DNA of 64,000 bases from Anaeramoeba ignava BMAN (lineage: Eukaryota; Protista; Anaeramoebae), in NCBI GenBank assembly GCA_028826165.1, contig JAPDFW010000112.1:120996-184995 (forward strand), written 5' to 3'. Both the position numbers and the translations under genes were made by a program. The notes under the pieces are model-generated. The model saw only the letters and a list, made by a program, of their open reading frames with translations. It was not told the origin of the DNA and ran no database searches. Shown here piece by piece: positions 21,556-64,000 of the stretch (position 1 is its first letter; each line of letters opens with the position of its first letter).

Positions 21556-21566
21556 TTTTTTTTTTT
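21556..21566 (+). terminator. RNA polymerase III oligo-T terminator
   Basis: T11 immediately 3' of the tRNA. Confidence 0.7.
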
Positions 21567-21994: not shown

Positions 21995-24900
21995 TTAATT
22001 CTTTGTTGCTTTTCTAATTAATACCATCCAATTATCCAAATCTGTTTTTGAATCAGAACTAATGGAATAAACATTTTTACTTTGTTTAATTGAAAAAGAA
22101 CCACCCTTTTTAGATTTTGTTGAATCCAAACTAATTCTGATACTTGAATCTAAATAAATCCATTCTTCAGGAAAATCAACAGGACTTGAAGGTTGGTCCT
22201 TGTAAATCAACAGAAACTTTTCTTTGAGTTGAATAAACTTCTTTTTGAAACTTTTTTTGTTGCTTGTCTTCCAATTTAGAAGTCCTTGTTTGATATTTGG
22301 AGTATTAAAAAGAGAGGGATAATTTTCCTCAAAATGATCTCTAATAAACTCAAAATCCAAATGTTGAATCATCATCTTTGGTTTTTGATCACTTGATTGA
22401 TTTGAGTTTTGCATTTTGATTGGAGTGGGTGATTTGGATAAATTTTTTTGAGAAGAAAGTCTTGGCGAAAGTGGAGACACTCTTTTAGATTGTTTTTCAA
22501 TTTGCTGTTCTTTTGAATTTCGATAGACTTGTTTCATTTGAGTTGAGTCTGTCTTTTTGGATTTATTTTGATATGGACTTTCTTGTTTGTACTGGCTTTC
22601 TTGTTTCTGGTTTTGATTTGAGACCACTTCAAGTTCTTGTGTAGATGTTATTATATGAATTGGCTTTTTGTCGGTTTTTTCTTGATTTTCTTTTTCTTTG
22701 TTTTCTTTTTCTTTGTTTTCTTTGTTTTCTTTGTTTTCTTTACTTTCTTGAATGAACTGAGACATCATGTATTTGGATTGTTTTGATTTAAGTTGTGAAT
22801 TTGTTTCATGGAATAAAGTTTTTAAATCACGAACATGAGAAAGATTTCTGTTTAAATCTTTGTAAATTCTTTCGAGTCTCATAATTCCCATTTCGCTTAA
22901 ATAGTCATCCATGAAATCAAACAAATATTCTTGAATACTTGACATTATTTCCGCGATAATTTTTGGATCTTGTGTTGTATTTATATTTGTATTTGTATTT
23001 ATATTTATATTTGGAATTTCATTTGAATTAGATGAAAGGAATGATGGTTCAAACAAGCGATATAAAAGTAATGGGCTAATTGATTCTCTTTTCCTGAGTG
23101 GGATTTGCTCTTTGATTTTAATTGGTATTTGTTCTTGTTCTGATTCTCCGTTAAAGATTTTTTCAAAAACATTCTCGTCAAGTAGGTTTTCTTGTGGGGT
23201 ATTTGGTTGTGTTTTATTTGCAATCATTTCTCGAATTTCTCTTGGATGAAAGTTTTTGTTGTTGATTGGTTGAGTTTTCATGGTTTCAAGGAGTTCATTT
23301 TGGATCTTGAATAGTATTTGGTGAGCAGTCTAATGAAAATATTTTTATATTTTATTATAAATATTTTATAAATATTTTTATATTTTATTATAAATATTTT
23401 TATATATTTTATTATAAATATTTTTATAAATATTTTATTATAAATATTTTTAAATATTTTTATATATATTTTTATATATTTTATTATATATATTTTTATA
23501 TATTTTATTATAAATATTTTTATATATTTTATTATATATATTTATATAAATATTTTTATATATTTTATTATAAATATTTTTATATTTTATTATAAATATT
23601 ATATATTTTTTTATATATTATAAATATTTTATATTTTTTTATATTTTATTTTTTTTTATATTTTTTTTATTTATATTTTTTATATATTTTATTATAAATA
23701 TTTTATAAATATTTTATATTTTATTATAAATATTTTATAAATATTTTTATATATTTTTTATATATTTTATTATAAATATTTTTATAAATATTTTATAAAT
23801 ATTTTTATAAATATTTTATAAATATTTTTATATATTTTATTATAAATATTTTATAAATATTTTTATATATTTTATTATAAATATTTTTATATATTTTTTT
23901 ATAAATATTTTTATATATTTTATTATAAATATTTTATAAATATTATATATATATTTTTTATAAATATTTTTATATATATTTTATTATATATATATTTTTA
24001 TATATATTTTTACCTTATCAGGATCAGTCAAGCCTAAAGTCGAGAAAAGTGATGAAAGAAAGGCAGGGATTCTATTCCACAATACTTTTATATTCAAAAT
24101 ATTATCAAAACAACGGAAAAGTTGTTGTTCAATTATTCCACACTCTTCCCCTACAAATCATATTTTATTAATTTATTTATTAAATTATTTATTAATTTAT
24201 TTATTAATTTATTAATTTATTTATTAAATAATTTATTAATTTATTAATTTATTAATTTATTGATTATACTTGAAACACCATCTTTTAATAAAGCATTTTC
24301 TTTAAGAAGTAAAACAATATGATGCGCTAAAAACTTATTAAAATTAAAATTGAACATAAAAATCACAAAAAGAATTCTAACTGAAGTTATAAATTCAAAT
24401 TCTTCATCGAAACTAATGTGATTTTCTTCGACAATGTGTTGAAATAATTCATATTCTATAAAAACAAGGCGATCAAATCCTAAAGATATTTCTTTTTTGA
24501 TTGGATCGAGAAATGATTTTTTGACCAAATTAAGTCCATAAAATGAAACAACTTTTTGAATTGCGTTCAAAAGATGAGGAATACTTGAAATGATATCTTC
24601 CTAAATTTTTTAGATAATTTTATATTTATTTAAAATTTATTTAAAATTGATATTTATTTATTTGATATTTATTTAAAATTGATATTTATTTAAAATAGAT
24701 ATTTATTTATTTAAAATAGATATTTATTTATTTAAAATTGATAGTTATTTATTTAAAATTGATATTTATTTAAAATTGATATTTATTTAAAATTGTTTTG
24801 TATTTTGTTTACATTTGCTCGTCTTTGTTTAATTGAATTGATTTCTTGAGAAATATTCATTAAATCAAAAGGTAGTGAAAATTTATTAAGAATTGTATTC

Positions 24901-27900
24901 ATTATTGAAAAATTTGAGCTAATTTGATTCCATAGTGTTTCTGATTGCTTAATAATTTCCATATTGTAATTTGCAAAATTAATAAGTATTTGTGCTTTTT
25001 CAACATCAATATTTTCGCTCATCAAAAACACAATTGGCCGCTTCTCATCAGTTTCTTTATTATCCTTCTTTTCGTTAACATTTTCTTTAAGATTCTTAGT
25101 TGATTGGAGTTTTTTCTCAATTGAAACCAATTTTGACTTCAAATCCTCAATTTTTTGTTTTTCTTCATCAACCATAGATTGGGTAGATTCCAAATCGTTG
25201 GTTTTCTTAACAAGATCTTCTTCAAGTTTCTTTAATTGATCTTCAGCTTTTTTAACTCGAAAATTCCCAGTGTTTGATTTTGATTCTTCATTTTCGACTT
25301 GCTGTTTTTGTTCAGGTTGAGGAGCAGTAAATTTACTCAAAGATTGTGTGTGAGGAATAGGTTTAGCAACAATGTTACTGGGCTGCTCTTTGGGAGGAGA
25401 CTGGAAAGATATACTTGGTTGGGATTGTTGTCTCTTGATTTTTGCAATGATTTCATTGATATCTTTTTTGGGTTCAGTTGTTTGTGTTTGTGGATTCTCA
25501 ACCGCTTTATTTTGTGTAGTAGATGAAGTATAGGATGTTGTGGAAGTTGAGAGAACGGGATTTTTCCTATATTTACTAAAGGGATTCAACACCGTTTTTT
25601 GTGGAAGTGCTTGATTTTCAACCGTTTGTTGATTTTGAACAGAATTTGTATCGTTTGATTTGCTATTCAATACTGGATTGGGTTTCGGGTTCGTTTTTGC
25701 ATTCGATGTCGTGTTGACTGAAGTTGTCATGTTTGTTGTTTTATTCGATGTGTTTTGTGCTGCTTGTTTGTTCATTTTTAATTTTTCTAAAATTGACATT
25801 GTTGATGTGGTTTTTGTTTTTGAAAGTATTTTTTGAACGTTTGATGAAAAGACATTTGGTGTGGATGTTGTTGTTGTTTTTTGAGCTTGTTTTTTTGTTG
25901 GTTTGTTTTTGACTGCTGGACTCCAAAGAAATAAATTAGAAACTAACTTGACAAGTTCAGCTTCATTTGGCTTTAAGGAGATAATAAATGATATTAAAGT
26001 GTATTTTATTATTTTTTATTATTATTTTTTATTATTTTTTATTATTATTTTTACTTTCTCAATATCTGTCTCAGTACAAAATGGTCCAGTAAAGTCTGTT
26101 TGTTTCAATAAATCAAGAAATTTTTGAGATCTTTGTGATTCAATTGGCCATTTTGCAACAGAAACAAAATCAAGATCAGTTGTTGTAATTTCTGATAAAA
26201 GAAACGATAAAGCAATACAATTCTGGAAAAATTCAAATCAAAAATTTAATTCATAAAATATTTAATTCAAAAATATTTAATTCAAAAATATTTAATTTAA
26301 TAATATTTAATTTAAAAATATTTAATTTAATAATATTTAATTTAAAAATATTTAATTTAATAATATTTAATTCAAAAATATTTAATTCAAAAATATTTAA
26401 TTCAAAATATTTAATTTCATAATATTTAATTCAAAAATATTTAATTTCAAAAAATATTTAATTTAATAATATTTAATTCAAAAATATTTAATTTCAAAAA
26501 ATATTTAATTTAATAATATTTAATTTAATAATATTTAATTCATAAATATTTAATTCAAAAATATTTAATTCAAAATATTTAATTTAATAATATTTAATTT
26601 AAAAATATTTAATTTAAAAATATTTAATTCAATAATATTTAATTCAATAATATTTAATTTAATAATATTTAATTTAATAATATTTAATTTAATAATATTT
26701 AATTTAATAATATTTAATTTAATAATATTTAATTTAATAATATTTAATTCATAAATATTTAATTCAAAAATATTTAATTTAATAAATATTTAATTTAATA
26801 ATATTTAATTCATAAATATTTAATTTAATAATATTTAATTTTATAATATTTAATTTAATAAATATTTAATTTAATAATATTTAATTTAATAATATTTAAT
26901 TTAATAAATATTTAATTTAATAATATTTAATTTAATAATATTTAATTTAATAATATTTAATTTAATAATATTTAATTTCAAAAATATTTAATTCATAAAT
27001 ATTTAATTTAATAATATTTAATTTAAAAATATTTAATTTAATAATATTTAATTTAATAAATATTTAATTTAATAATATTTAATTTAATAAATATTTAATT
27101 CAAAAATATTTAATTTAATAAATATTTAATTTAAAAATATTTAATTTAATAAATATTTAATTTAATAAATATTTAATTTAATAATATTTAATTTAATAAT
27201 ATTTAATTTCATAAATATTTAATTTAATAATATTTAATTCAAAAATATTTAATTCAAAAATATTTAATTTAATAATATTTAATTTAATAATATTTAATTC
27301 AAAAATATTTAATTTAATAATATTTAATTTATAAATATTTAATTTAAAAATATTTAATTTAATAATATTTAATTTAATAATATTTAATTATTATAATATT
27401 TAATTTTATAATATTTAATTTAAAATATTTAATTCAATAATATTTAATTCATAAATATTTAATTTAATAATATTTAATTCATAAATATTTAATTTAAAAA
27501 TATTTAATTCATAAATATTTAATTTAATAATATTTAATTTAATAATATTTAATTTAAAAATATTTAATTTAAAAATATTTAATTTAATAATATTTAATTT
27601 AATAATATTTAATTTAATAAATATTTAATTTAATAATATTTAATTCAAAAATATTTAATTTAATAATATTTAATTTAATAATATTTAATTCAAAAATATT
27701 TAATTTAAAAATATTTAATTTAATAAATATTTAATTTAAAAATATTTAATTTAATATATTTAATTCATAAATATTTAATTTAATAATATTTAATTCAATA
27801 ATATTTAATTTAATAATATTTAATTTCAAAATATTTAATTCAATAATATTTAATTCAATAATATTTAATTTCAAAATATTTAATTCAAAAATATTTAATT

Positions 27901-28527
27901 TAATAATATTTAATTTAATAATATTTAATTTAATAATATTTAATTCATAAATATTTAATTCAAAAATATTTAATTTAATAAATATTTAATTTAATAATAT
28001 TTAATTTAATAATATTTAATTTAATAAATATTTAATTCAAAAATATTTAATTCAAAATATTTAATTTAATAATATTTAATTCAAAATATTTAATTCAAAA
28101 ATATTTAATTCAAAAATATTTAATTTCAAAATATTTAATTTCAAAAAATAGCAAATAATAAATATTTAAAATATAAATATAATTATAAATATAAATATAA
28201 ATATAAATATAAATATAAATCTGAATTGAAGAATTCGGGATTTGATTTTAGAAATTTTTAATTAGTAAATGTTCGTTTAGTTTAATCAATTATTCTTATT
28301 GTTTTGGGTTGTTTTTTTTTTCTTATTTTATATTGTTTTACTTTCAAATCTTCGTTAAAATTCGAAATTTCTTTTTGATTTTTGTTCTTTAAATGAAAAT
28401 TAACCCATTTTTGTAATGTTTGAATTGGTGTTAAATTAACATCTTCTGGGTTTGTTTTTAGTAATTTTGCCTCTGCATGAAATGCAACTCGATATAACAA
28501 GGCTCGAACATCAAATGGTAATTCCAT
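21995..28527 (-). CDS. Multi-exon protein with N-terminal calponin-homology (CH) domain, coiled coil and C-terminal PH domain
   Basis: Exon 28527-28342 (LQKWVNFHLK..SNFNEDLK), intron 26223..28341, exon NCIALSFLL..TETDIEK, intron 25971..26054, then PNEAELVKLVSNLFLWSP in frame with ORF 24783-25799. Further introns lie at ~24601-24812, ~24151-24258 and ~23329-24013. The PH domain IKQGLLNWK..DLDNWMVLIRKA is at the C-terminus. Confidence 0.7.
23335..24010. repeat. A/T-only low-complexity tandem repeat filling an intron
   Basis: Variants of aaatattttt(atat)attttattat between the splice sites at ~23329 and ~24013. Confidence 0.8.
26245..28150. repeat. 15-bp minisatellite (TATTTAATTTAATAA) filling a 2.1-kb intron
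   Basis: A period-15 repeat is directly visible. Confidence 0.9.
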
Positions 28528-28982: not shown

Positions 28983-31900
28983 TTATTTCTCATCATTGCT
29001 TTTTGAATTGAGTAATTCCTTAACAACATTTGATTGAAAACTATAATTTTTAAATATTTTTTGTTCTTCCTGAGTTAAAATTGAAGAAACTTCTAAAGGT
29101 GGAATCCAATTATTCTTTTCAATATTTTGAAAAAGTGGCTAATAAAAATAAATTTAAAAATAAATTTAAAAATAAATTTAAAGTTTAAAATGTTTTTTGA
29201 AAAAGTGGAATAAAAAGTACTTTAGGAATAAGAGGAGGTGTTAAGCTTTTTTTCGCAATTTGTTCCCAATCAATTCCTTTAAAAAATTCATGTTTTTGAA
29301 TTTCTTGAAAACCATTATAACCAATTCTTTCATTTGGATTTTTTTCCAAAAGCTAAAAATAAAAAAAAATTATTTAAGAAATTTTCCCTAAAAAAAAAAT
29401 TTTTTTTTTTGATTAAATTTTAATCTTGTACTTTTGCTATCAAATCTCCACAAGGTTTAGAAATTAATTCATCAATGATTGGTTTATCATTTAATATTTG
29501 ATCAAGCATTTTTGTTTGATCTGGTGAATAAAAAGGAGGCTAAATCAAAATTTTCAAAATTCAAAAAATAAATAAATCGAAATTCGGAATAAAAATGAAA
29601 AAAAACTTACCAAACCATGAAACATTTCATATAAAATAACTCCTACACTATAAAAATCAGAAGCAAAAGTCGGATTTTGAATTTTAAGTAATTCTGGAGC
29701 TAAATTAAATTAATTTAGGTTTTTTTTTTGGGATTTAATTTGAAAATTTTAAAGATATTTTTTATTATAACAAAATATACCCATATAAGCAAAAGTTCCA
29801 CAAACAATTGGTGGATTTATTCTTGTTGATGTTTCTTTGATTATATCAGTTGCAGAATCAAAATCTATGATTCGAATATGACCGTCTTGAGCTGAAATTA
29901 AAATATTTTCAGGTTTTATATCACTATTCAAAGAAAACATTTCAATTTAATTTATAATTTAATTTATAATTTTATTTATAATTTAATTTATAATTTAATT
30001 TATAATTTAATTTATAATTTAATTTATAATTTGTTTATAATTTTATTTATAATTTAATTTATAATTTAATTTATAATTTTATTTATAATTTTATTTATAA
30101 TTTAATTTATAATTTTATTTATAATTTTATTTATAATTTAATTTATAATTTTATTTATAATTTAATTTATAATTTAATTTATAATTTAATTTATAATTTA
30201 ATTTATAATTTTTATTTATAATTTTATTTATAATTTAATTTATAATTTTTATATTTTATTTTATATTTTATTTATATTTTAATTTTAATTTTAATTTATA
30301 ATTTTATTTATAATTTTATTTATAATTTTATTTATAATTTTATTTATATTTTTATTTATTATTTTAATTTATAATTTTATTTATAATTTTATTTATAATT
30401 TTATTTATAATTTTAATTTATAATTTTTATTTATAATTTAATTTATAATTTAATTTATAATTTTATTTATAATTTTATTTATAATTTAATTTAATTTTAA
30501 TTTATAATTTTATTTATAATTTTATTTATAATTTAATTTATAATTTAATTTATAATTTAATTTATAATTTAATTTATAATTTTATTTATAATTTTATTTA
30601 TAATTTAATTTATAATTTAATTTATAATTTAATTTATAATTTTTAATTTATAATTTTATTTATTTATTTATATTTTTATTTATAATTTTATTTATAATTT
30701 AATTTATAATTTAATTTATAATTTTATTTATAATTTTATTTATAATTTTATTTATAATTTTTATTTATAATTTTATTTATATTTTTATTTATATTTTAAT
30801 TTATAATTTTAATTTATAATTTTAATTTATAATTTAATTTTATAATTTAATTTATTATTTTATTTATAATTTTATTTATAATTTAATTTATAATTTTTAT
30901 TTATAATTTAATTTATAATTTTATTTATAATTTTATTTATAATTTTATTTATAATTTTATTTATAATTTTAATTTATAATTTAATTTATAATTTTATTTA
31001 TAATTTAATTTTATAATTTAATTTATAATTTAATTTATAATTTTATTTATAATTTAATTTATAATTTTATTTATAATTTTATTTATATTTTTATTTTTTT
31101 TTTTATTTTATATTTTAATTTATAATTTAATTTATAATTTAATTTATAATTTAATTTATAATTTAATTTATAATTTTATTTATAATTTTATTTATTATTT
31201 AATTTATAATTTTATTTATTATTTTAATTTATTATTTTATTTATATTTTAATTTATAATTTTATTTATATTTTTATTTATAATTTTATTTATAATTTTAT
31301 TTATAATTTTATTTATATTTTTATTTATAATTTTATTTATAATTTTATTTATAATTTTATTTATAATTTTATTTATAATTTTATTTATAATTTTAATTTA
31401 TAATTTAATTTATAATTTTATTTATAATTTTATTTATAATTTTAATTTATAATTTTATTTATAATTTAATTTATAATTTAATTTATAATTTTATTTATAA
31501 TTTTAATTTATAATTTTATTTATAATTTTATTTATAATTTTATTTAATTTTTTTTATTTATAATTTAATTTATAATTTTTATTTATAATTTTATTTATTA
31601 TTTTTATTTATAATTTTATTTATTATTTTATTTATAATTTTAATTACAATTTTATTTATAATTTAATTTATAATTTTTATTTATAATTTAATTTATAATT
31701 TTATTTATAATTTTATTTATAATTTTATTTATAATTTTATTTATAATTTAATTTATAATTTTATTTATAATTTTATTTATAATTTAATTTATAATTTTAT
31801 TTATAATTTTATTTATAATTTTATTTATAATTTTATTTATAATTTTATTTATAATTTAATTTATAATTTAATTTATAATTTTATTTTATAATTTTTATTT

Positions 31901-32664
31901 ATAATTTATTTTTTTATTTATAAATTTTATTTATAATTTTATTTATAATTTTATATAATTTTATTTATAATTTAATTTATAATTTTAATTTATTATTTTA
32001 ATTTATTATTTTATTTATATTTTAATTTATAATTTTATTTATATTTTTATTTATAATTTTATTTATAATTTTATTTATAATTTTATTTATAATTTAATTT
32101 ATAATTTTATTTATAATTTTATTTATAATTTTATTTATAATTTTATTTATAATTTTAATTTATAATTTTATTTATAATTTAATTTATAATTTAATTTATA
32201 ATTTTATTTATAATTTTATTTATAATTTTATTTATAATTTAAAGTTACCCATGAATGATTCCAAAAGTATGGATCCAATCTAAAGCAACTAAAATCTCTG
32301 CGATATAAAATCTCCAAAAATCCTCACCAAAATTATCAGTTTGATGCATAATATGAGTCAACTCCGGACCATGAATGAATTCAAAAACCAAATACAAATT
32401 ATCTTCATCTTGAAAAGAACCAAAAGCATTAGAAACAAAAGGACCTGAAAGTTGAATTGCAAGATTTCTTTCTTTGAAAACATTTTGAACCAGATCTTTT
32501 GTTATGATCTCTTTTTTATTATATTGTTTAATCGCAACTTGTTGTTTTGTTAGTTTCTCTATTGCTAAAAATAATTTAGAACTGTGTCCTCTTGCAATTT
32601 CCGTTATTAACTGAAAATTTTTTGCATCAATTCTTTTATTAAAATCACAACAAATATTTCCCAT
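28983..32664 (-). CDS. AGC-family Ser/Thr protein kinase, N-terminally lipid-anchored, with atypical HGD/DFD motifs
   Basis: MGNICC N-terminus; VAIK; HG|DIKPEN across intron 29924..32248; IIDFDSAT; CGTFAYM-APE; downstream exons SDFYSVGV, KNPNERIGYNG..KHEFFKGIDW..PPLIP; hydrophobic motif IFKNYSF; stop at 28983-28985. Confidence 0.85.
29945..32240. repeat. 12-bp minisatellite (TTATAATTT[A/T]AT) filling the 2.3-kb kinase intron
   Basis: A period-12 repeat is directly visible. Confidence 0.9.
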
Positions 32665-48619: not shown

Positions 48620-50695
48620 TTATTTTTCAAACAAAAATTCCTTTAAAAGTTCTAGTTTTTGTCTTAAATTAAATACAGGAAAATTTGGATCAAATGATAA
48701 ATTTTCAAGAAGAAAATGAAAATCTTCATTTTGAATTTCATTTTGAATTTGATTTTTATTTTTATTTTCATTTTGAATTTGAATTTGATTTTGAATTTGA
48801 TTTTCATTTTGAATTTGATTTTGATTTTGATTTTGATTTTCATTTTGATTTTCAATTTGATTTTGATTTTTATTTTGATTTTCAATTTGATTTTCAATTT
48901 GAATTTGATTTTGATTTTTATTTTCAATTTGATTTTCAATTTGAATTTCATTTTTAATTTGATTTTTATTTTGATTTTGATTTTGAATTTGAATTTCATT
49001 TTGATTTTGAATTTGATTTTCATTTTGATTTTGATTTTGATTTTTATTTTCAATTTGATTATTTTGATTTTGATTTTGAATTTGAATTTCATTTTCAATT
49101 TGATTTTGATTTTTAATTTGATTTTGGTTTTCAATTTGATTTTGAATTTGATTTTGATTTTGAATTTGATTTTGATTTTGATTTTCAATTTGAATTTGAA
49201 TTTGATTTTTATTTTCAATTTGATTTTCAATTTGAATTTCATTTTTAATTTGATTTTTATTTTGATTTTGATTTTGAATTTGATTTTCATTTTGATTTTG
49301 AATTTGATTTTCATTTTGATTTTGATTTTGATTTTTATTTTCAATTTGATTATTTTGATTTTGATTTTGAATTTGAATTTCATTTTCAATTTGATTTTTA
49401 ATTTGATTTTGATTTTGAATTTGATTTTCAATTTGAATTTCATTTTTAATTTGATTTTTAATTTGATTATTTTGATTTTCAATTTGATTTTTATATTCAA
49501 TTTTAAATTGATTTTGATTTTCATTTTGATTTTCAATTTTAAATTCATTTTGATTTTCAATTTTAAATTCATTTTCTAATTGATTTTCATTTTGGTTTTC
49601 ATTTTGATTTTCAATTTTAAATTGATTTTCATTTTGATTTTCAATTTTAAATTGATTTTGATTTTCAATTTTAAATTCATTTTCTAATTGATTTTGATTT
49701 TGATTCAATTTTAAAATTTCTTGCTTAAGAATATTCCAACTTTCTTCAAGATTTTTTGCAAACAAATCAAGAGTAAATTGAAGAACTTTAAATTGAGGAT
49801 CTTTTTCCCATAAATAAAGAACATAATTGATAGGTTTGAGATTTTTAAAGACAAGAAAATAATGATCAGGATATGAATTTTTTTTGAAACAAATTGAAGG
49901 AAAAATTCTTTGAGTTTTTTCTTGAGAATCAATAGATTCATGACCAATAAGAATTAAAAGGGACCAAATAGGAGGAGAAAGAAATGTATTTGGAGAATTT
50001 CGTGGAACACAAATATGCACTTCTGTGTCTGTATTTTGTGCGGATGTGATGCTGTTTTTTAATTCCAAAAGATCATTCTTGAAACTTTGAATAATTTCAT
50101 TTTCATAATCAAAAGGGGATTCATTTAATAAAGATGAATAAGTTGAATATTTTCTTCCTTCAAGTAAAGCTTCAACATATTTTTTTTCTTTTAATAATTT
50201 CTTGTATTTAATCTGATAAATCCTCGCTAATATTTCTGTTTCAATTGGCGTATTTTTGATTGAATCAATTGAAACACAAGAAATCAAACAATCCAATTCA
50301 AATTCCTTTTGAAAAATCACATTCATTAAATTTTTGAATATTTCGATATTGAAGTTAGTTTGCAAATTTGATAAAATTTCTTGAATATCTTCGTTATGAA
50401 TTGGTCTCGATCGAAAATGCCGAGAAATTATAGTGTTTGATATTATTCGATGCTTTATTAATTCAGATGCTTTCTTAGGCATTAATTTTCTTGCCTCTTC
50501 AAAATCCTTTTCTGCTTTTTTATTCTCATTTAATAAACAATAACAATATCCTCTATTATTATAAAATAATCCAATTGTTGATTTTTCTTCAATTGCTTGT
50601 GAAAGTAATTCTACAGCTTCTCTTAATTTTATTTCTGTTTGTGATTCTTGTGATAAAATAATACATGCTTTTTTATATTTTAAATAATATTCCAT
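48620..50695 (-). CDS. TPR-containing protein with a long N/Q/E/I low-complexity tract
   Basis: [48 protein letters not shown] is a typical TPR pair; intact 691-aa ORF. Confidence 0.75.
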
Positions 50696-50903: not shown

Positions 50904-53900
50904 TTAATCTGGTGAAGACCAAACAATTAATGCAGTTCCTCTTTGATACCATGTTTGAATTGGAACATCTTTTGGTGTTGTTAAATCAAGTGAAAATAAT
51001 AACTCTTTTCTTGTATTATTCAAATAAACAGGTAAATTAATTAAATCACTTCCAACTTTTGATTTCACATTCAATTCATTTTCTTGATTAGGAACCCATC
51101 TTAATTGAACTCTGGGTAAAGGATTTGAAATATCACTTGAAATAGCCAAACAATTATTTTTCCAAATTGCTCCTTCAAGTGTAAAATCATCAACAAAAAA
51201 ACTTGTGTTTTTAAATTTGGATTGTGTAAACTTCCCAATTTCAATCTCTAATTTTAAGGTTTCTAAAGACCACATATTAGATTGAGCCGCAGATTGTCTT
51301 GTTGCTGTGATAAATGCCTCTGGTGAAAATAACCCACCAAGCCATATTCCATCAAGACAATAATTTTTGGATAAAATAATTTTTTGTAACTGTTTGATTC
51401 GTTTTGAAAAATCAACAATCCAAATTCCAACAGGAATATTAGCAACTGAATAAACTCTCCAAGAAGAAGGAATAGTTGCTTGAGTTAAATCACGAATCAA
51501 ACCTCTTAAGTAATTTGTGTGTTTCTGTTTTCCTTGACATAATAATAAAATCTTCTCAAGATCTTCTCGAACTTTATTCAATAATTTTTTCCCTATTATA
51601 ATTTCCCTATTGAAACATCTAAACAATGGGTCTTTAATACTACTTTCTGTTTTCTTCAATGAATCAAGTGATTTTGGTAAAATATCAATCCATTCTCTTG
51701 TTGATTTTTCAAGTTTTTTCATCCATGAAGGTCGACGATCTTCTTTTTTTTCTTTTTCAATATCTGATTTTTCTTCTTCATAAATATTTTCCATCTTCAA
51801 GAAATTTCCAAGTGTTTCTTTGCCTTGATTTGCTAATAAAAGAAGTTCTGCTTTAGCAGGTAATCCGAGCCAAGCAGGATTTTCATTTTTAGGTAATTTC
51901 TCAATCCAATCAGCAAAATGTTCCATTTTGGTTCCTTCTGGAATTTCAAGTGAAAATTTATCAAATCCATCTTCAGTAAGTGAATCATATTCAATCAATT
52001 TGAAATTCAATGAGTAACTTTTGGGAACAAATAGTTTTTCAAGCATTGAATCAAGAAGTCTTTGATCAAAATCATTATCAATTCTTCCACCATACATAAC
52101 TTGTCCCAAAATGGTTCTAATTGCAATCCAAGGAATTTTCTCAGGATCAACATTGGATCTTCCCTTTGCAACAGATCCAACCCAATAATCAATTGAATCA
52201 AGTGAACATCTTTGATCTGCTTCATTGAATTCATATATTTTTGACCATCCCAATGGAACATATCGAAGTCTTTCTTGAATAACAGCATGAAGCCAAGAGA
52301 GAATAAAATGCATTCTTGCTCTTTCAACTGGTGCTCTGTTGACTCTTTTACTTGATAGAAGTGAAAATGTGTGGGAAAGATTAGCTTTGATTCCTGGAGG
52401 TGCTTCAAACACAAAAATTTGGCACAATCTCAAGAAATTAACAGGTAATTTAGGATTAAATTCTGAAGTCATAAACAATCTAAATCCTGGTTCTGGATTG
52501 ATATTTCTGACTCTTTTTTCTATCTGATTCAACCATGGTGGTGCTAAATGGACATTCTTAATCAAAACCCAACTTCCAATCTTGGCTGCTGTTTCAATCG
52601 CTTGTTCAGCATGATGATAACTTTCTTGTGATCCAATTGCTATTGATTGTTTTTTCACTCCCAATTCATTCGCTAATTCATCTACTCTCGTACTAGGATC
52701 ATATCCTGGTTGTGTGCATAATAATAATGGTTCTCTTGCATTTGATTCTTTTTCAATAACATTTTTTAAGTTCAATTCTGGTATTGATTGGATATTGTAT
52801 CCAAATACTGTTTCAATAAGACTTGATGTTCCTGAAAGAACTCGATCAGGTCTGAAGAATTTCAATAATAATAACCGCTTAAGCATTTTCTTCACATTCA
52901 TCCAGTGAGCTTTTTCTTCTTCGCTTACAACTTCGGTTGATTTTGAGAACGAAAATCCAATTTGTTGTTGTTTTTGTTGTTTCCCAATTTTCAGGAATAT
53001 TTGATTCTGGATTTGCTGATTTGATAAAGTTCTTCCATTCACTTTGATTCTTTCTAATATGAGAAGGTAAATCTTTAAATGAAGGTAATTCTGAGATAAT
53101 TTGAAGGTATTTAATTTGAGAAGATGGAATAACTGATTCAGGAATATTATAATAAGAATTATCAATTTTATCTTGCAATTTGTTTGGAGAAAGAATTATA
53201 TCTGAACGTAATAATAGATTCATTTCTTCCTCATCAAAATCTTGTCCCATTTGTTTCAGATAAATTTGGGCAAGTCTCAATGCAAATGTTAGTCTGTCTT
53301 TGTGAAGTAATCCATATGAAACTCTTCTGTAAATCACCTTGAAAAGATCGTGTGTTAAAATTTTCAATCTTTCTTCATAATCTTGAACATTCATAATATT
53401 CTGATTCATTGTGTTAACAACATTGAAGAAAATTCCAAGGAAGAAATTTAATGAATATTGATACAAATAATGAATTGAACTGAGTTGTTCAAGTGTGAAA
53501 TAAATTCTACTTGAAGATAATGCAAATGGTTCATATTTGGCTGAAATTTTAGTGATATTTGCCAATGTTTGATCTGCTTGATTTGCCTTTTCTGCAACTT
53601 CTGCTGCTTCTGTTTTCAATCTTTCAAGTGAATTGAACACGGAATCATCATCCAAAATATTTCCTTCAACTTTATTCAAAGCATCAAGAAGTGATTTTTC
53701 CAAATTTCTCAATCTGACTTTGTATTCTCCTTGCAATTTCAAAATATCTGATCTTTGTTGATCAATATCAGGTCTTTCATTTCTTAAAATATGATTCAAA
53801 CATTGTGCTTGTAAACTCTCAAGTGTAACTGTGAAATTGCAGAATGTTACTCTTGAACATAAATCAGGTGTGAAATTGAATGAAGGATCTCTTGTTGTCA

Positions 53901-56900
53901 TGAATAAATTAAATGATGGTGAAAAATAGATCTCTTGATCTCCTAATCGAATGACAACACCTCCTCCACTTTTGTGGAACTCCTTATTCAAAACTGGATT
54001 TAAAATTGGATCAATATTCTCAACATCTTGTAAAAGAATAGCTGTTCCAAATCTCAATGCACTTTCCAAATTTTTCATGAAAGAATCATCAAGGAAACTT
54101 GTTTTCGTAATTTTGGATGATTCAAATTGTCTCATTAAAAATTCAGTTGCTTGACCTGATGGATCAATAACAAGAGGATAACGATTAAATCTTGTTAAAA
54201 TGATTGCATTTTCAGTGCAAAGATCATCTGCAGGAAGAGAATTAGATTGCCAAATCAATCTATCATCAGGAACAGATAGATATTCAATTAATGATAATCC
54301 TTCTCTATATTTAATATTAACAGTCATTAAATGCTTTTTCCAAATATTCATTAATACTTGTCTGTAATGTTGATCGAAAAATCCAATGTAAGTTAAAAAG
54401 GAAGCTGAAAGTAAAACATCTCCTGGAACTGTTGACATTTGTTGCTGGAAACTCTGTGACTCCAAACTCCATCTTTCTTGTTCGCTTGATAAACTTTTCA
54501 TTAATGCAATTGATCTTTCAACTTTTTGTGAAACAAGATTCATTTCTGATTTGATTTCTTGTGTTTGGGAAATCAATTGTGCGTATTCTTCTGTATATCT
54601 TTGAATACTTTTCTCCAAATTTTCAATCATATCATTAAGTTCTTTTTGTTTATCTCTGAGTATGTTTGCTTTCTCTTCAAGTGATGCTACTTGTTTTTTC
54701 AATGGATCTACTTTCTCAAGAACAACTGAGTATTGAACTTGTGCTTCAAGCCATTTTTGCATTGGTCCACATGCTCTACTTGCTCTATTAACATTTTCAA
54801 AAGTGAATTTTGGATCGGCAAGTGCCTTGGAAACAAGATCTCTTGCTTTAGATGTCATTGAATTGGTATCAAAATTAACAACACTTGGAATAAAATCATC
54901 TTTTCTTAACAATCTTCGAATTTCTCCCCATGAAGTCTCTTTACTTCCCAAAAATTGTGAAACTGCTTGAAGAGTCATTTTAACTAATTCAGGTGGATTT
55001 GACATGGATTTTAATTCTTCTAAATGACTTTTCTTGATACTGTTAACACTTTTCTTTGCTGCTAAAACTGCAGGTTCTGCTTTTGAAAGATCATCCATTG
55101 CAATTTTTTGTTGTGCTGCAATTTCCTTGTTTTGCTCTTCCAATTTTGTTTGGATTTCAAGTGAGGCCTTTCTCTTTGCTTCTGCTTCTTGTTGATCTTT
55201 AACCATTTGTTTCAATTTAGCTTCTGCTTCTTCATTTTTGGATTCAAGTTCTTTTTCTTTTTGTTTCAATTTAAGTTGTAATTTCGCAACTTCTTCTTCA
55301 GTTTCTTTCATCTTTTTCAATCCAACATCCAAATGATGTTGTTGTTCTTCAAGAGAACTTCTTTTTTCATTGAAAAGATTCAGATAATGTGTAATGAAAT
55401 CCAAATAATGTCTTGGTGTAACATAATTACTTCTTCCTTGAGTTTTTTGCAATTTCTTTGATGATTTTTCAACACTTTTATGAATTGTAACAAAAGAACT
55501 AACAATTGATTCTCTATGATTAGGTGAATCTGGGAAATTATCTTTTGCATCAAATTCATGTGGGAAGCTAATTGGTGGGAAATAGTTTGGATTTTCCAAA
55601 TTAAGATCTTTTGTGAATTCATATCCAACTTGATACATTGCTGATGGTGACCAATCTCCAAACCAATCAAGTACACATCTGTTAAACAAAGCTGGTGAAG
55701 TTGCTGCTCGATTTGAAAAATCTCCTGTTGCTGGATTCATTGTGAAAACAATATGTAAATTGTTTTGAACTTGTTTTGTAAACCAATTAAATAATTCATC
55801 ATTTGTATCAAGAATTGCTCCATCAGATTGAGCTGCTTCTCTGCATTGATTCATTAAAGCTCCCATTTCATCTCCTTCAAATAAACCTGGTACTTCTCCA
55901 CTTGCCAATAATGCATTCATTCTTTCCAAAAATGATGTTTCAAGAATATTACTTTCATCGAAAATGAAACATATTTTTTCTCCTTTAATTCCTGCTCTTT
56001 TCATAACAACTCTAAGATCTTCATCAAAATCAAATAATGTGTATTTTCTACTAATTTTGATTTGGAAAACTGATAATCCATTCATCCAAGCAACAAATCT
56101 TGATAAAACTGTATTATGTGTAACTGTGAAATCTCCAAGTAAAAATCTTCTATTCCCATCAATTTCAAATCCACAATAATCTCCTTCTCCAATTAATTCA
56201 ACTTCAATTTCACTTTCTAAATTTGAATTTTGTATTTTATTTTGATTTCTAATTTTCTTATTTGGATTTCTAACAGGAATTTCTTCAATTTCATTTCCTG
56301 ATATTATAATTTTTTCTTTTTCTTTTTCACAAGAAAATCCAAGTGAACGTGAAATGAATTGAATATCTTTATATAATTCTTCTTGATTTTCATTAATTGG
56401 AATATTATAACAATTATTCATTTCATCATAAATTATTTCATCATTTGAATCAATTAATCCTGCCAAAATATTTAATCTTGTTTCACGATCATTAATTTTA
56501 TAACATTGAGGAATTTTAATTTCTTCATCTGATTTATTGTTTTCCATTCCAAGATAAATTCCCAAATTATAAGGATCTATTGGAATATTTGGATTTGAAT
56601 TGAATTGAATTGGAACTTTAAATCCAACATGATATTTTTTCCAAATTTGAGGTTTCTTAATATAATCAATAACAGCAATATCAATAACATCTCCTTTATG
56701 ATTATATTTTTTACTTTCCAAAATTTGATTTATAAATTTGTTTGCGAAATGAAGAGCATTTAAACTTGAAGTAAAAGATTTAGATTCAGATAATTTTCTT
56801 TTTTTACCGTAATTGAAATATTTAATTTTCTCACAATGATTTTCAAAATAAAGAACTGAATATCTTTTAAGATCTTTTTCATGATTAAGAATTGAATTGA

Positions 56901-59900
56901 TTGTTAATTTCAAAGAAAGAATATGAGGTTCATTAACAATATATTCATCACCATTTGATTGTTTTATTCGATACATATTTTCTCTTCCTTTACAAATACT
57001 TAAAACATTTCTTGGATTTGAATCATCACCCATAAGTTGATCATTAACTTTAATATTTTTAGCCAATTTTGATTTTCCATTATAAAGCATAACAGGAGTA
57101 TTTGGATCTAAGCATTTACCAGCACCACTTGATCCAATTAGCAAACAATGACCTAAAATTAAAATAAAATTAAAATAAAATTAAAATAAAATTAAAATAA
57201 AATTAAAATAAAATTAAAATAAAATTTAAATAAAATGAAAATAAAATTTAAATAAAATGAAAATAAAATTAAAATTAAAATTTAATTAAAATTAAAATAA
57301 AATTAAAATAAAATTAAAATAAAATTAAAATAAAATTAAAATAAAATTTAATTTAAATAAAATTAAAATAAAATTTAAATGAAATTAAAATAAAATTTAA
57401 ATAAAATTAAAATAAAATTTAAATAAAATTTAAATAAAATTAAAATAAAATTTAAATAAAATTTAAATAAAATTTAAATAAAATTAAAATAAAATTTAAA
57501 TAAAATTAAAATAAAATTTAAATAAAATTAAAATAAAATTTAAATAAAATTTAAATAAAATTTAAACAATATTTAAATAAAATTTAAATAAAATTAAAAT
57601 AAAATTTAAATAAAACTTAAATTGAAATTATTTTGAAATTATTTTGAAATTTACCTTGTGGTTGCTTTAATACTCGATCAATTCTTAAAATATGATCAAG
57701 TGCTTCATTAAATAATACTAATTTAACATTCAATTCTTCTTCATAAAATACTTTCAATCTGGCTTTAACATGTTCTCTTAATTTCTCTCTATCAACATCC
57801 ATATAATCCTTAGATAACCAATCACTAAATAAAATGGGTCTTTCAAGAGTTTTCTCTCGGATTCCTGGGAAATATTTCTTAGAAACTGAATCTAATTGTT
57901 CATCAGTCCAATCTCTTTCTTCTTTATAAACTAATCTATCTTGAAACAATCTTAATCCTTCATGAACAAATATTCTAACAAGTCCATCTAAATCAAGATC
58001 TCCACCTAAAGGTTTTAAAATTTCTCTGAGAGAACGAGTCCATCTACTCAATTCTCTTGGTGAATAAACATAATGAGGTTGCATATCTTGTGTGAATCTT
58101 TGTTGAGAAAGTGAATAAAATTCAACCATTGCATCTGTTAATGATCTTGCATTTGAACGAAGAGTAGGACACAATCTAAGAACTGCTCTATTAAAAGTTC
58201 CATAAATTTGTTTGAGTGAATCTGCAGAAGGATAATCAACAAGAATTACAGGTGCATGTCTAAGGAATCGATGTGATAAAGGAACTCGACCAACCATTGT
58301 TGGTGGATTACATGCTCCTACAAATTGAATTCTTCTTGTTGTTACCCATTGATAATCCGATATTCTCCAAAATCCTCCTCTTTCAACTAATTGTCTTAAA
58401 AATGTTATTACTTTTTGTGTTCCATATCGATCTTGTTTGGGAAGATTAATTTCATCACAGAAAATAACAAGCCATTTATCTAATTTTGTTGGCTCAAGAA
58501 TAACTCCATTTGGTGTTTTTTGATATTTGCAATAATGTGTTAATGTTTTCATAACTAATTCAGGTGTTGTTGCACTTGAAAAGTTAATTCCTACAACTTC
58601 AAAATTTGGTAATGATCGAAGTGTTGAATATAAAGTCATTGTGTTATGTGTTACAACAAAATTATCTGTTAAATATAATTCTTCTGGATGATCAATTGTA
58701 ATACATGTACATTCATCTTCTCCAACACATTCAATAGAAATTATTCTTCTTTCAAATACAAATGGACTTGGTTCTCCAATTTTATCTTTATTTTTGGATA
58801 ATTTGAATAATTCTTTTGGTGTTTTATAGAAAATTTTGCATAAATTTGTTTTGTTTGAATTTGTTTCAATTGAACACATTCCTCCCAATGATTGAATAAC
58901 TTTTTTAAAATCTTGTGATAATTTTGTTGATTTACATTTGAATATAATTGAGTTATCTTTATAATTAATGGATGAATTTGAATCTAATAATCCTTTAATA
59001 ATTTCCAATCTAATTTCTTTAGAATTGAAAATGTAATCTTGAGGAATAAATAATTTATCTTTTGGTTGATTTAAAAGTCCCAATTCTTCAAGTATTTCTT
59101 TATAATGATTTTGTTTTTCAATATTTTCATTTCCAATATAAATTTCTTCTTTTCCAATTAAAACTCCAAGTAAATAAGGATCAAAAGGAACATTTCTTTC
59201 CATAAATAAAATTGGTTTTGGAGTATCAATACTAAATCTAGCTCCTTTTCTTTCAGGAATAGTTGGGATAATTTGAAGATTATCAATAATTTGTTGAGTT
59301 GTAAGAACAAATTTTTGTTTTTTATAATTTGAATGATCATTAACAGTCCAAAGATGATCAGCAGAACAATCAACAAAATCTCCATCTTCAAATTTAACTC
59401 GATAAACATGAAGTTTACCTTGTGGATAAATACCAATAATTTTAGAAGTTTTTCCATCAGGAGTGCAAACTACATCTCCAATTTTTAATTTTCCATTAAT
59501 TTTAGGTCCATTTGGAGTATAAACTGTTGCTGAATTTCTAAGTGATTTACCAGATCCAGGTGGTCCACAAAGTATTAAAGGAAGATGGTCTTTAAGCCAA
59601 GAATTAACAACTTCTTCATGTCTTAAAGTATCCACAGTTGGGATAACAACATCTGAACTAGCAACCATATATGTTTCAATTTCAAGATTTGGAACTCGAT
59701 TTTTCCATAGAGCCCATTCTCCATCTTCAATTTGAACTTCAAAATCAATTAATGGATGCATTTTATCTTCAGGTCCTTGAATATCACAATTATTTAATAA
59801 AAATGTTCCAAATTCTTCTCGATCTTGTAAAGACATTGATCCTCCAAATCCCCAAATCAATGAGAAAAGTAATCTTTTTGTAACATATTTTTTGGATATG

Positions 59901-62900
59901 TTCCTTTTCCATTGAAAACCAGAATGAGTTGAATTATATTCGTGAATATGGTTTATTCCTTGATCCAAAAGTGAGAATGCTGATGTTAATGAACGAAGAT
60001 TTGTGAAATCCATTACATTTTGTTTTTTAGAAGCATAATCAATTGCTTTAATAACAACACCATTTGAATCGAAATATTTTTTTAAAGCATCAACACAAAT
60101 TTCTTGAGTTCTTAATAACTCTTCATTTTTTTCTTTTTCATCTGAAAGTTGCTCTTCAAATCCAGTTTTTTCACTTTCTAATAAAGGAACATGTTTAGTT
60201 TTTTCAAGATAATGAGCAAAATTCATATCTAATGAAATGATATCATCAGAGAACCAAACCATTCCACATCTTGAAACTGTTGCTGGTGTTGCATATCTTA
60301 AGTCTTGAACTTCAAACATTACTCTGACATTAGGAGTCAAAGCAACTCTTTCACCATTAGGCAAAGTAAGTATTTTATTATCATCAAGAACTGAATTTAA
60401 ATTCTCAACCCAAATAGAATCAACATCTCCATCAAAAATAATCCAGTGTCTCATATTTGATTCTCCTCTTACATTATCAACAATTTTCCTTAAAATATGT
60501 GTGAATATTCCATCAGTCCATTCTCTTGTTGTTGGATCAAGAACTCCGAAAAGTTCTTCTTTAGTAATAGCTTTAGGATCAATAACATGTGATTGTGATT
60601 TAATTCCTTCAACTCTTTCAAGTGCTTCCAAAAGAATTTTCCATGCTGTTGATTTTCCACTTCCTGATGGACCAACCATCATAACTCCATGATGAATTTT
60701 TTGTAATTGAAATAATTGAAGCATTTTTTCTATCCATCTGTTTCCTGGAACTAAATAATGTTTCTTGCAAATATCATAAATAACATTTCTTAATTCTGCC
60801 ATTTCTAATTCTATTGGAAGTGCTCCTGGGAATACATCTGATAATAAACTGTGTAGTAATGGAATATCATCTGCAACTAATTTTGGAATAACTGTTTCAC
60901 ATATACTTTTAATAACTACAGATTTTTCTTCTTCTCCAAGTTGTTTTTTATCTTTGACTTCATCTTGTTTTTTATCTTTAATTTCTAATCTTTTTATATT
61001 TCCTGCTGAAACTAATACACTTTTTAAAGCTCTTAATCCAAAATCATAATGTTTTTGTGGTGAAAGTTGGTCTGCACATAAATTAAATAAAGGAACAACT
61101 TTTCCTGATAATTGTTCAGCTGTTTTAAATCCTATTTTAAAATTAATTAAAATTAATTAAAATTTTATATTTTTATTTTTTATATTTTTATTTTTGTTTT
61201 TACCTTGAGAAAAAAGCATAACTTGAGCAATTAATTCTCTATCAGGTTTAACAACAGAAATTGTTCTAAATAATGTTTTTAAATTTTCTGGTAATTGAAC
61301 TCTTCCAGTATAACCAGGATTCCTAAATTAAAAAAAAATTTTTTATTTAAATAAATAAATTTTTGTGTTTTAAATTTTATATATTTTTTACATTGTAATA
61401 AAAATTCCCATATTTGGATTAATTTTAACATTTCTTCCTATCAATTCAACTTCTTTTAATTGTTCTTTTAAAGATAATTGAATTGTTTGAATTTGTTGAG
61501 AAACTGCTGATAACATTCTTTCTTCTAATCTATTAAATTCATCAAAAACATCCCCAAGCTCCACATTGACAAAGACCAACAAAAATTCTTCCCATTGCTT
61601 GGAAATCAAAATTTTCATCACAATTAAAAACCAAAACAAATCTTCCTAATTGATTTCCAAGTGCTTTAACAGTTTCTGTATTATGTGTTACAATATGATT
61701 TTCTGTGATAAATAAATGATCTGGATGATCAATTAATATGCATTGACATTCATCTTTGCAAATATATTCAATTTTGGAAACAAATCTTTCATTAATAAAT
61801 TTTTTAGATTTTTTAGCAATTAAAATTTTATCATTTAATGTGAAAAGTTTTTCTGGTTTTTCAATTTCAATTCGACAATTAAATATAATTTCCTCGTTTT
61901 GTTTTGTTCTGGAAATATAACAAATTCCTCCAAGTGATTCAATTAATTTCTTTAAATCAAATGCTAATTGTTGAGATGATGTTGAATAAATTGGTGAATT
62001 TGTTTTGGAATCAAAATATCCATTTCTATCAAGAATTCCTTGAAGTAATTGGAATCTTATTTCTTTGGAATTAAATTGAAATTCATTTGGAATAAATTTA
62101 TTTTGTGAAAGTTTTGGCATATAATCATTAATTTGATCATAATAAATTTCATAATTTCCATCAGATGTAAGATTTAATAAATGCTGAATATTTTGGAAAA
62201 TTTGTTTGTTAATTGAATTGGAAATTTTGATATTTTGGTTTTCTAATATCTTTTCATTTCCTGCAATTAAAACTCCAAAAAGATAAGGAGATATTTTGGT
62301 TTTTTGAGTTTTGAAATTTGTATATTTAGGAGTTTCTATTGAAATTTTTTCTTCTCTTCTTAAACATCTTCTCATTTCTTGAGTTGTTATAATTTTTAGA
62401 TGAATGATCAACAGACCAAAAGATGATCATCAGAACAATCAACAAAACCACCATCTTTGAAATGAACTCTAAAAACACCAATTTTACCTTGAGGATAAAC
62501 AGCAAGAATTTTTAGCAAATTTTCCATCAGGGAGTACAAACTTCATCACCAATTTGTAAATCACCATTTAATTTAGGACCATTTGGAGTATAAACTATAG
62601 TTGAATTTCTTAAAGATTTACCAGTTCCAGCAGGACCAGCAGGAGCACCACCTTTTTATTTATTAAAAAATATTTATATTAATTTATATTTTAAATTTAT
62701 TTAAATATTTTTATATTTTATTTACCTAATCGCAAATTTAATGCTTGTGTTAATGTAAGATAACATCGATCTGTAAGTGGTGTTTGTACTAATTTATCAA
62801 CAACTCCTAAATATTCAAATCCATATGCAAATGATGCATTTGCAATTGAAATCATTAATTTCGTTTCATGACTTTCCTTTTCATTCCAATAAAATCTCAT

Positions 62901-64000
62901 TTCTTCAGTCCATGCAAAATCTTTTAGGGTTTTTACACCAGCTTGAATCAATCTTCTAATAACATCTCTTTGATGAATTAATTCAATAATTAAATGTTCA
63001 TATTTCTTTCTTGTAATTGGTTGTAAATCAAAAAGAACATTAAAAGCTAACAAATCTAAAATATTTCCAATCCAATCAAGTGTTTGTTTAAGGAAAACTT
63101 GACTATTATTTGAAAGTGCATTTTCAACTTTTTGTGTCCAAATTACTTTAATAGTAAGAACTATAATTTGAGCAGGTGTTGTTTCAACCCATTTTAAAAA
63201 GAGATCCTTATCAAGTTCATCTTTTGAAGATAATTGAATAAATTCTCTTAATGAAATATCCAAACAATTTCCCAAAGAAACTCTCATTTGATTTTCAACC
63301 ATATTCAGCCATTCATGAATTTTGGAAATTTCTTTATATTTAACAGGATCTGGAAAGTTAATTTCTTCATGTTCTCTTGATAACATCCCAATAATTGATG
63401 TTTCATCATCACTTAATTTAAGTAAAGCAATTCCTGCAAACATTTTCCTTAAATGTCTTTGTATTTTAACTACATCTTTGCTGTGTCCAATAATTTCCAA
63501 AAGATCTTCATCTCCAACAAAATAAAATCTTGGGAAAGCTGATCTTTGTTTTTCTAGATATTCACCAAGAGCCTTTTGAACTTTGGAAAGCATATCAGAT
63601 AATCTTTCCAATGTGTGTTGAAGACCTTGAATATTGAGAACATCAAGAATATGAGGTGATTTGGCGACTTTTTTCATCATGATGAGGAAATCATTATCAA
63701 TAGTTTTGAATTTGGATGATTCTTGAGGTAATAATTGTTGGATATCACTACTTCCACAAAATACTCCTTCTAAATAAACCCATTTTCTTTGAACATCAAT
63801 CCATGTATCAAAAAGTAAATGTAATCTGTTTAATTTATCTTCCCACGCAATTGCTTCTTCTTCAAATACTTTTATAAAATGGAGAGTTTTCATTGCGACA
63901 AGTGAATTTAGAGAATCAGAAATTTTGGTAAATAAATCATCCCATCCTTTAATCAGTTTACATTTATTCTGGTAATTCACGAGATCAAGGATGTAGTTTT
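50904..64000 (-). CDS. DYNC1H1: Cytoplasmic dynein heavy chain (motor domain; 5' part outside window), interrupted by three inteins
   Basis: [47 protein letters not shown], four P-loops, stalk/MTBD ([14 protein letters not shown]), AAA5-6 and C-terminal [13 protein letters not shown]. Introns 62652..62725, 61323..61391, 61132..61203 and 57153..57654. Apparent homopolymer frameshifts near 61545 and 52980. Confidence 0.95.
56113..57114 (-). mobile_element. Intein 3 in the dynein AAA4 Walker A (GSSGAGK|intein|TVLSRFVAW), 334 aa, degenerate LAGLIDADG domain
   Basis: In-frame 1002-nt insert: [13 protein letters not shown]...VNEPHILSL...[10 protein letters not shown]...[10 protein letters not shown]...[22 protein letters not shown]|T. 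Removing it restores [16 protein letters not shown]. Confidence 0.97.
57155..57615. repeat. 11-bp minisatellite (TAAAATAAAAT) filling dynein intron 57153..57654
   Basis: A period-11 repeat is directly visible. Confidence 0.9.
58643..59545 (-). mobile_element. Intein 2 in the dynein AAA3 Walker A (GPPGSGK|intein|TMTL), 301 aa, degenerate LAGLIDADG domain
   Basis: In-frame 903-nt insert: [13 protein letters not shown]...CSADHLW...[10 protein letters not shown]...[10 protein letters not shown]...FVVTHN|T. Removing it restores the canonical GPPGSGKTMTL. Confidence 0.96.
61680..62616 (-). mobile_element. Intein 1 in the dynein AAA1 Walker A (GPAGTGK|intein|TETVKALG), ~311 aa, degenerate LAGLIDADG domain
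   Basis: Starts [13 protein letters not shown], has block B CSDDHLW, ends HIVTHN followed by Thr. Endonuclease-like blocks are YLFGVLIAG and [10 protein letters not shown]. Four +1 homopolymer insertions in ~62395-62532 must be removed (937-4=933 nt). Confidence 0.92.

Follow-up and report, generated by a model that had tools for sequence, protein, structure and literature searches.

Class 3 inteins are defined by a Trp-Cys-Thr triplet at positions B:12, F:4 and G:5 (PMC5050341), and both the 'classic' insertion between the Lys and Thr of a P-loop and a proposed phage origin of the class were described earlier in the same work (PMC5050341). The nearest described system lies in the organism that concerns us here, the protist Anaeramoeba ignava, for which 103 inteins have been reported (Gallot-Lavallee et al., PNAS 2023, PMC10710043); the presence of three of these in one dynein paralog of strain BMAN is part of that report. 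As set out in its main text, the inteins of cluster 1 are class 3-like, with N-terminal residues that are atypical and common to phages; all of them are inserted in P-loops and branch together, which suggests transfers between the P-loops of unrelated proteins. Intragenic and inter-paralog intein transfers are also proposed in Anaeramoeba, and splicing experiments are published for other inteins of the genus (PMC10710043, main text). The stretch of DNA analyzed here, referred to as the window, comprises 64,000 nucleotides of A. ignava BMAN (contig JAPDFW010000112.1, positions 120,996 to 184,995 of the forward strand). It holds the greater part of a cytoplasmic dynein heavy chain gene with three inteins, and the question addressed is how the first two of them, lodged in the AAA1 and AAA3 modules, are related to one another and to the other P-loop inteins of the genome.

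Dynein inteins within a family of P-loop inteins

Inteins 1 and 2 belong, with high probability, to a radiation of phage-type class 3 inteins that is specific to Anaeramoeba and targets the Walker A motif between its Lys and its Thr. In the full protein tree (LG+C20, careful search, 36 external relatives), nine inteins that start with SL.. form one clade (99/97; 100/98 in a smaller set). Its members reside in dynein AAA1 and AAA3, PRP16, another DEAH helicase, kinesins (one of these from A. flamelloides), a BRR2-like helicase and a RecA-like ATPase. The sister of the Anaeramoeba clade (98/95) is a PhoH intein that likewise has an SL start (SLRNSE) and that retains the canonical LAGLIDADG Asp residues; it occupies L036:8001-9770 on a 181-kb metagenome contig whose content, small unannotated open reading frames plus genes for thymidylate synthase and DHFR, suggests a large phage. 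Separate entry of inteins 1 and 2 into dynein from outside sources such as phages or viruses, without any movement between sites of the genome, might be entertained: the wider family is very large, most of it carried by prokaryotes or phages, and the nearest outgroup sits on a phage-like contig. It is nevertheless extremely improbable: the nine Anaeramoeba P-loop inteins constitute a single clade that excludes all 36 external relatives, and they have derived features in common, namely the SL.. start and the loss of the LAGLIDADG Asp. The single clade therefore leads us to reject separate acquisition from outside and supports spread within the genome.

The dynein gene runs on the minus strand with its Pfam domains in the order DHC_N2, AAA_6, AAA_5, AAA_7, AAA_8, MT stalk and AAA_9; the protein KAJ5071176.1, named by NCBI 'intein-containing dynein heavy chain precursor [Anaeramoeba ignava]', is the same gene on another contig of the assembly. 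The Walker A loops of AAA1, AAA3 and AAA4 are each split by an intein exactly between Lys and Thr. The features are as follows (a slash denotes the point of insertion, here and below).

50904..64000, minus strand: cytoplasmic dynein heavy chain gene, 3' two thirds (DHC_N2 region to C-terminus), running past the end of the window (Pfam and NCBI name)
62617..62637, minus strand: AAA1 Walker A codons GPAGTGK, abutting intein 1 on its upstream side, with the +1 Thr codon at 61677-61679 (AAA_6 profile broken here)
61680..62616, minus strand: intein 1, in the AAA1 Walker A loop, GPAGTGK/../TETV; of probable class 3 type with degenerate LAGLIDADG; 311 amino acids in intact copies (sequence and gene copies)
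60650..60673, minus strand: AAA2 Walker A loop GPSGSGK/ST, free of any insertion, with Ser as the +1 residue (sequence and AAA_5 of Pfam)
59546..59566, minus strand: AAA3 Walker A codons GPPGSGK, abutting intein 2 on its upstream side, with the +1 Thr codon at 58640-58642 (AAA_7 profile resumes after the intein)
58643..59545, minus strand: intein 2, in the AAA3 Walker A loop, GPPGSGK/../TMTL; 301 amino acids, uninterrupted (sequence)
56113..57114, minus strand: intein 3, in the AAA4 Walker A loop, GSSGAGK/../TVLS; 334 amino acids, Cys1, PI-SceI/VMA type (sequence and Pfam)

Past inteins 1 and 2 the host sequence resumes seamlessly, the AAA_6 and AAA_7 profiles of Pfam picking up again on the far side. 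Both inteins have Ser at the start and ..VTHN/T at the end. The residues of the class 3 triplet are found in intein 2 as Trp66 (B:12, at 59348-59350), Cys281 (F:4, at 58703-58705) and Thr299 (G:5, at 58649-58651), with the terminal Asn301 at 58643-58645, and in intein 1 as W66, C291 and T309; judged by these residues, both are probable class 3 inteins. Position 1, at which class 3 is defined as having no nucleophile, is Ser in inteins 1 and 2 and Ala in most outside relatives. Sequences of the Protein Data Bank that match are those of the gp41-1 intein and of the 'Replicative DNA helicase' chains 6bs8 (which we take to be the class 3 M. smegmatis DnaB1 intein), 6rix and 6riy, and the N- and C-terminal splicing blocks align with them. 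The endonuclease part is degenerate: the Pfam LAGLIDADG_3 match falls under its cut-off (18.1 and 17.0 bits versus 22.5), and the canonical LAGLIDADG Asp is replaced in intein 2 (..IGKE and ..DSNS) and in intein 1 (..IAGNE and ..DRNG). Outside relatives P0155 and P0018 retain it (..DTDG).

Intein 3 belongs to an intein family other than that of inteins 1 and 2 (Pfam Hom_end_hint, 1.6e-17, and Hom_end); it can be aligned with them over the endonuclease part alone, at 29-30% identity, and the splicing domains are unrelated. Inteins of its type (CL..NTP...GDFTVTHN) are also found on contigs C82, C55, C102, C106 and C56 (L023, L024, L025, L027 and L028). They are inserted after the Lys of the nucleotide-binding motif in an SMC protein, a Lon protease and an MCM protein, and they split the phosphorylation motif DK/TGT in two P-type ATPases; the intein 3 type is a second family that is repeatedly inserted after Lys and before Thr or Ser.

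A search of the assembly with inteins 1 and 2 yields about ten related P-loop inteins in the A. ignava genome. Their hallmark is SL..VYTP.GP...THN/T, and every member of the family is inserted at GK/T. Those outside dynein are the following.

C68, two copies: PRP16 intein
C75, plus a degenerate copy on C103: intein of a second DEAH helicase
C27 and C93: two kinesin inteins
C18: intein of a BRR2-like helicase
C126: intein of a RecA-like ATPase
C71: intein of an SNF2 protein, more distant

Pairwise protein identity within the genome family ranges from 27 to 48%. The hosts of the SNF2 (L019, C71) and BRR2-like (L010, C18) inteins have a spliceosomal intron within or beside the codons of the Walker A motif, shortly before the intein; introns at intein sites are discussed as possible homing barriers in the main text of the 2023 paper (PMC10710043). 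Outside the genome, 14,046 library proteins are related at E<=0.001 in an exhaustive profile-free search. Among the best library matches nearly all bear the intein after the GK of the Walker A loop, and outside relatives typically start with AQPLD.... Their hosts by Pfam annotation are PhoH, DnaB, RecA, terminases and other ATPases (word-index search).

The question of sisterhood of inteins 1 and 2 and the proposed mode of spread

The preliminary description of this locus had interpreted inteins 1 and 2 as close paralogs that record a jump between repeated modules of one gene, AAA1 to AAA3 or the reverse, with one dynein intein as the immediate parent of the other. Such a direct jump has points in its favor. 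Intein 2 is the best match of intein 1 in the genome (226 bits versus 186 for the PRP16 intein). The two are nominally the most similar DNA pair, with codon positions 1+2 included in that statement (64.6% versus at most 62.2%), and over the first 210 bases their DNA identity is 82%, other pairs reaching at most 71%. The target sites of AAA1 and AAA3, CTGGAACTGGTAAA/ACA and CTGGATCTGGTAAA/ACA, have 16 of 17 bases across the junction in common; the closest pair of target sites in the family, however, is that of the two DEAH helicases, identical over those bases, with AAA1/AAA3 next. Finally, the approximately unbiased (AU) test rejects a clade of inteins 1 and 2 in none of five comparisons (p 0.12, 0.32, 0.12, 0.16 and 0.46).

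Against the direct jump stands the fact that no maximum-likelihood tree, protein or DNA, recovers inteins 1 and 2 as sisters. In the full tree intein 1 is weakly paired with a long-branch kinesin intein and intein 2 is basal to the rest; smaller protein sets, with or without the long branches, and DNA trees from codon positions 1+2 or from all positions have the topology of a star. Constraining the two together always gives a worse tree, lowering the log-likelihood in the same five comparisons by 4.2, 6.0, 8.0, 2.1 and 1.6 units. Nor is the relation of best matches reciprocal: intein 2 is nearer to the PRP16 intein (252 bits versus 225 for intein 1; 48% protein identity versus 46%). We regard the direct jump as unlikely on this balance, and a move from AAA1 to AAA3 is in any event indistinguishable from arrival out of any other P-loop intein of the genome.

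The likeness of inteins 1 and 2 has explanations other than sisterhood. No end branches in the clade are shorter than theirs, and their resemblance can be a shared ancestral state; it comes mainly, in our reading, from their having changed least since the radiation. The short branches account both for the likeness of the two to each other and for their being nearly as similar to the phage outgroup, and sisterhood is not needed to explain either. Identity between the two proteins (42% by BLASTP) is unevenly distributed: the N-terminal splicing domain reaches 70%, the middle part 35% and the C-terminal part 51%. The similarity at the DNA level is, in addition, inflated by shared codon usage, third positions being confounded by the usage of the host gene: the GC content of third codon positions (GC3) is 0.06-0.08 in inteins 1 and 2 versus 0.22-0.37 in the PRP16 and kinesin inteins, and 0.03-0.09 across inteins 1, 2 and the DEAH intein of C75. 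Closeness in DNA as a proof of sisterhood was accordingly set aside: AT-rich third positions are shared, positions 1+2 give a lead of about 3 points, and the DNA trees are stars.

The history that we favor in place of the direct jump is spread within the genome from a common ancestor. An intein akin to the P-loop inteins of phage PhoH, DnaB and RecA would have entered the Anaeramoeba lineage and then have spread within the genome to the P-loops of unrelated ATPases (dynein, PRP16, DEAH, kinesins, BRR2-like and RecA-like). The likely route would be endonuclease-triggered repair at sites with the common DNA motif GGnAAA/ACA, and AAA1 and AAA3 would both have been invaded because their target DNA is almost identical. 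Each intein would be translated in frame within dynein and, to judge by its motifs, excise itself by protein splicing, most likely initiated by the cysteine of block F (Cys281 in intein 2); the +1 Thr would attack next, and the terminal Asn would cyclize.

Several considerations weigh against this history. The star inside the clade means that no order of events can be given. Ser as the first residue, versus Ala in most relatives, may signify that splicing starts in the manner of class 1, and the splicing of the dynein inteins is itself something that we infer from motifs. No Anaeramoeba member has the canonical catalytic Asp in either LAGLIDADG motif, and the endonucleases of these inteins may be dead; since they look inactive by motif, the means of spread is likewise a matter of inference.

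The preliminary description thus fares unevenly. Its central notion, movement to non-allelic sites that have a Walker A context in common, is borne out by the Anaeramoeba-only P-loop clade, and the DNA contexts that it quoted for the two Walker A sites are correct; so is its statement that inteins 1 and 2 resemble each other more than either resembles intein 3, which is uninformative when intein 3 is of another family. 'Close paralogs' is right as to homology and overstated as to closeness, at 46% identity over the family alignment and with intein 2 equally near to the PRP16 intein. The jump from module to module in one gene finds no support in the trees, in which the phylogeny proposed as its test fails to bring out the sister pair, and the best matches are not reciprocal, although the constrained trees are not rejected. 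The outcome named as its refutation, each intein grouping with separate external inteins, is not what is seen either: both lie inside the Anaeramoeba clade.

Gene copies, frameshifts and possible exchange between paralogs

The assembly has three copies of the dynein gene: that of the window (C113), one on C92 (98.2% identical to it by BLAST, about 99.5% with gaps set aside) and one on C35 (about 96-97%). Intein 1 is an intact frame of 311 codons in C92 and C35, and the C92 copy served as the reference for its protein sequence. In the window copy it is interrupted by four +1 homopolymer insertions, at 62532, 62513, 62421 and 62397, and a fifth lies in the extein at 61548; compensating pairs of indels at 63891/63873 and 59916/59893 are also particular to the window copy, having no counterpart in the other two. 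C113 has private single-nucleotide differences at 61917 and 62079 as well. The preliminary description had placed both inteins correctly on the minus strand and its peptides of intein 2 are exact, whereas those that it gave for intein 1 can be read only by skipping the four insertions.

Contigs derived from the reads of four public runs (two studies), which covered 61300-62700 alone, bear on the reality of these frameshifts. None of them carries any of the five insertions (61548-62532), and the frame of intein 1 is intact in the reads as it is in the other two gene copies. Two of the contigs, from runs X3 and X4, are of mRNA type: an intron of 69 bases is gone, a second intron is bridged, and intein 1 is retained in frame. 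Intein 1 is thus transcribed in frame with its host. The two introns are the following.

62652..62725, minus strand: spliceosomal intron GT..AG, 35 bases upstream of the start of intein 1 (sequence; X3 and X4 contig ends at 62653 run into the upstream exon)
61322..61390, minus strand: spliceosomal intron GT..AG, 69 bases, downstream of intein 1 (joint of 61321 to 61391 in the mRNA-type contigs of runs X3 and X4)

One low-depth mRNA-type contig of 5.5 kb from run X4 has second pieces on both ends of intein 1 (62419-62630 and 61677-61734), with 652 bases between them. By position these would be the ends of intein 2 of the same transcript, but the zero mismatches listed for them clash with the N-terminal identity of ~82%; they were given no weight.

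Errors of assembly, in a redundant contig that was poorly polished, are the most likely cause of the frameshifts in the window copy, and C92 and the window copy may be a single locus that was assembled twice. It could be argued instead that the window copy is a decaying pseudogene whose intein 1 is truly frameshifted, a dead relic: five +1 insertions inside 1.1 kb, with two compensating pairs besides, in a gene that is present three times, are what decay might look like. We consider this improbable. Every insertion falls in a homopolymer run, none is found in a read-derived contig of the four runs, and the remainder of the window copy is open, in frames of 1061 and 1421 codons. Similar clusters of indels occur, moreover, in other near-identical duplicates, which points to unpolished redundant contigs: C92 has a homopolymer indel cluster of its own within intein 3, and aligning the two PRP16 copies of C68 takes 26 gaps over 3.6 kb. 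Users of the assembly should be warned that intein 1 of C113 shows frameshifts of the assembly type.

Comparison of the window copy with C35 (G000:C35:450023-462924) brings out a contrast between inteins and exteins. Over the three inteins there are 6 mismatches in 2838 aligned bases (0.2%; 99.8% identity), whereas outside them 388 of 10044 bases are different (3.9%), the divergence rising to as much as 6.8% in the exon that lies upstream of intein 1. When a mask of the three inteins is slid along the gene, equally few mismatches are met in 10 of 1309 shifts, all of them within 50 bases of the true position. The differences in the exteins are mostly amino-acid changes (89% protein identity over the DHC_N2 region), while the inteins have zero amino-acid changes. 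The low divergence reaches 100-700 bases into the flanks of the inteins.

The simplest reading of this contrast, to which we give an even chance, is that the dynein paralogs have very recently exchanged all three inteins, by homing or by intein-centered gene conversion with short co-converted flanks. Were it correct, the inteins would still be mobile, or would have been so until very recently, in spite of LAGLIDADG motifs that look dead. Inteins 1 and 2 would also have reached at least one dynein copy long after diverging from each other. The contrast makes recent intein exchange testable.

Two other ideas about the C35 copy were tried and rejected. Donation of the divergent extein patches by a fourth, intein-free paralog, which would account for the seeming conservation of the inteins, fails for want of such a paralog in the assembly, where the next dynein is 37% identical. 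C35 as a haplotig fares no better: the unique part of the neighboring gene downstream is without counterpart in the 30 kb of C35 examined around that copy, and C35 looks like a gene-sized duplicate.

The genome is strongly AT-rich. Kilobase stretches of nearly pure A+T lie in the window at 30001-32000 and also at 20001-22000 and 26001-28000 (GC 0.001-0.07); the one portion of these that was read, 30400-30700, consists of a short tandem repeat, TTTATAATTTAA being an example of its units. Dynein's neighbor (48620-50695, minus strand) encodes a protein in which a long Asn/Gln/Ile/Glu repeat (NQNQIENQ...) makes up the C-terminal half, and similar repeats are found at about 10500-11640 in the window and elsewhere in the genome.

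Comparison with known systems

The closest known system is the set of cluster 1 P-loop inteins (PMC10710043): the organism, the gene and the intein type are the same, the clade is reproduced here, and, as far as the main text of that paper goes, nothing essential differs. Publication in 2023 already covered the three inteins of dynein, their class 3 character and the spread from P-loop to P-loop, and no new kind of element is in question. What is added is, in the first place, an independent confirmation of the published clade. Non-allelic movement of inteins is rare and bears on the origin of new intein sites, and Anaeramoeba is the best eukaryotic case known. The main text neither singles out the AAA1/AAA3 pair nor mentions the contrast between dynein inteins and exteins, and the latter is possibly unreported so far.

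The move proposed for A. flamelloides Prp8, from site b to site d (PMC10710043, main text), is likewise one between two sites of a single protein. The two Prp8 inteins pair in the published tree, however, whereas those of dynein AAA1 and AAA3 are not recovered as sisters in ours. Farther afield, class 3 inteins known from phages and actinobacteria (mycobacteriophage Bethlehem DnaB and M. smegmatis DnaB1, for example) are like the dynein inteins in their Trp-Cys-Thr residues, in the Lys/Thr site and in the nested LAGLIDADG domain; they differ in that the dynein inteins have a eukaryotic nuclear host gene for a cytoskeletal motor, begin with Ser1 instead of an Ala-like non-nucleophile, and do not conserve the LAGLIDADG Asp.

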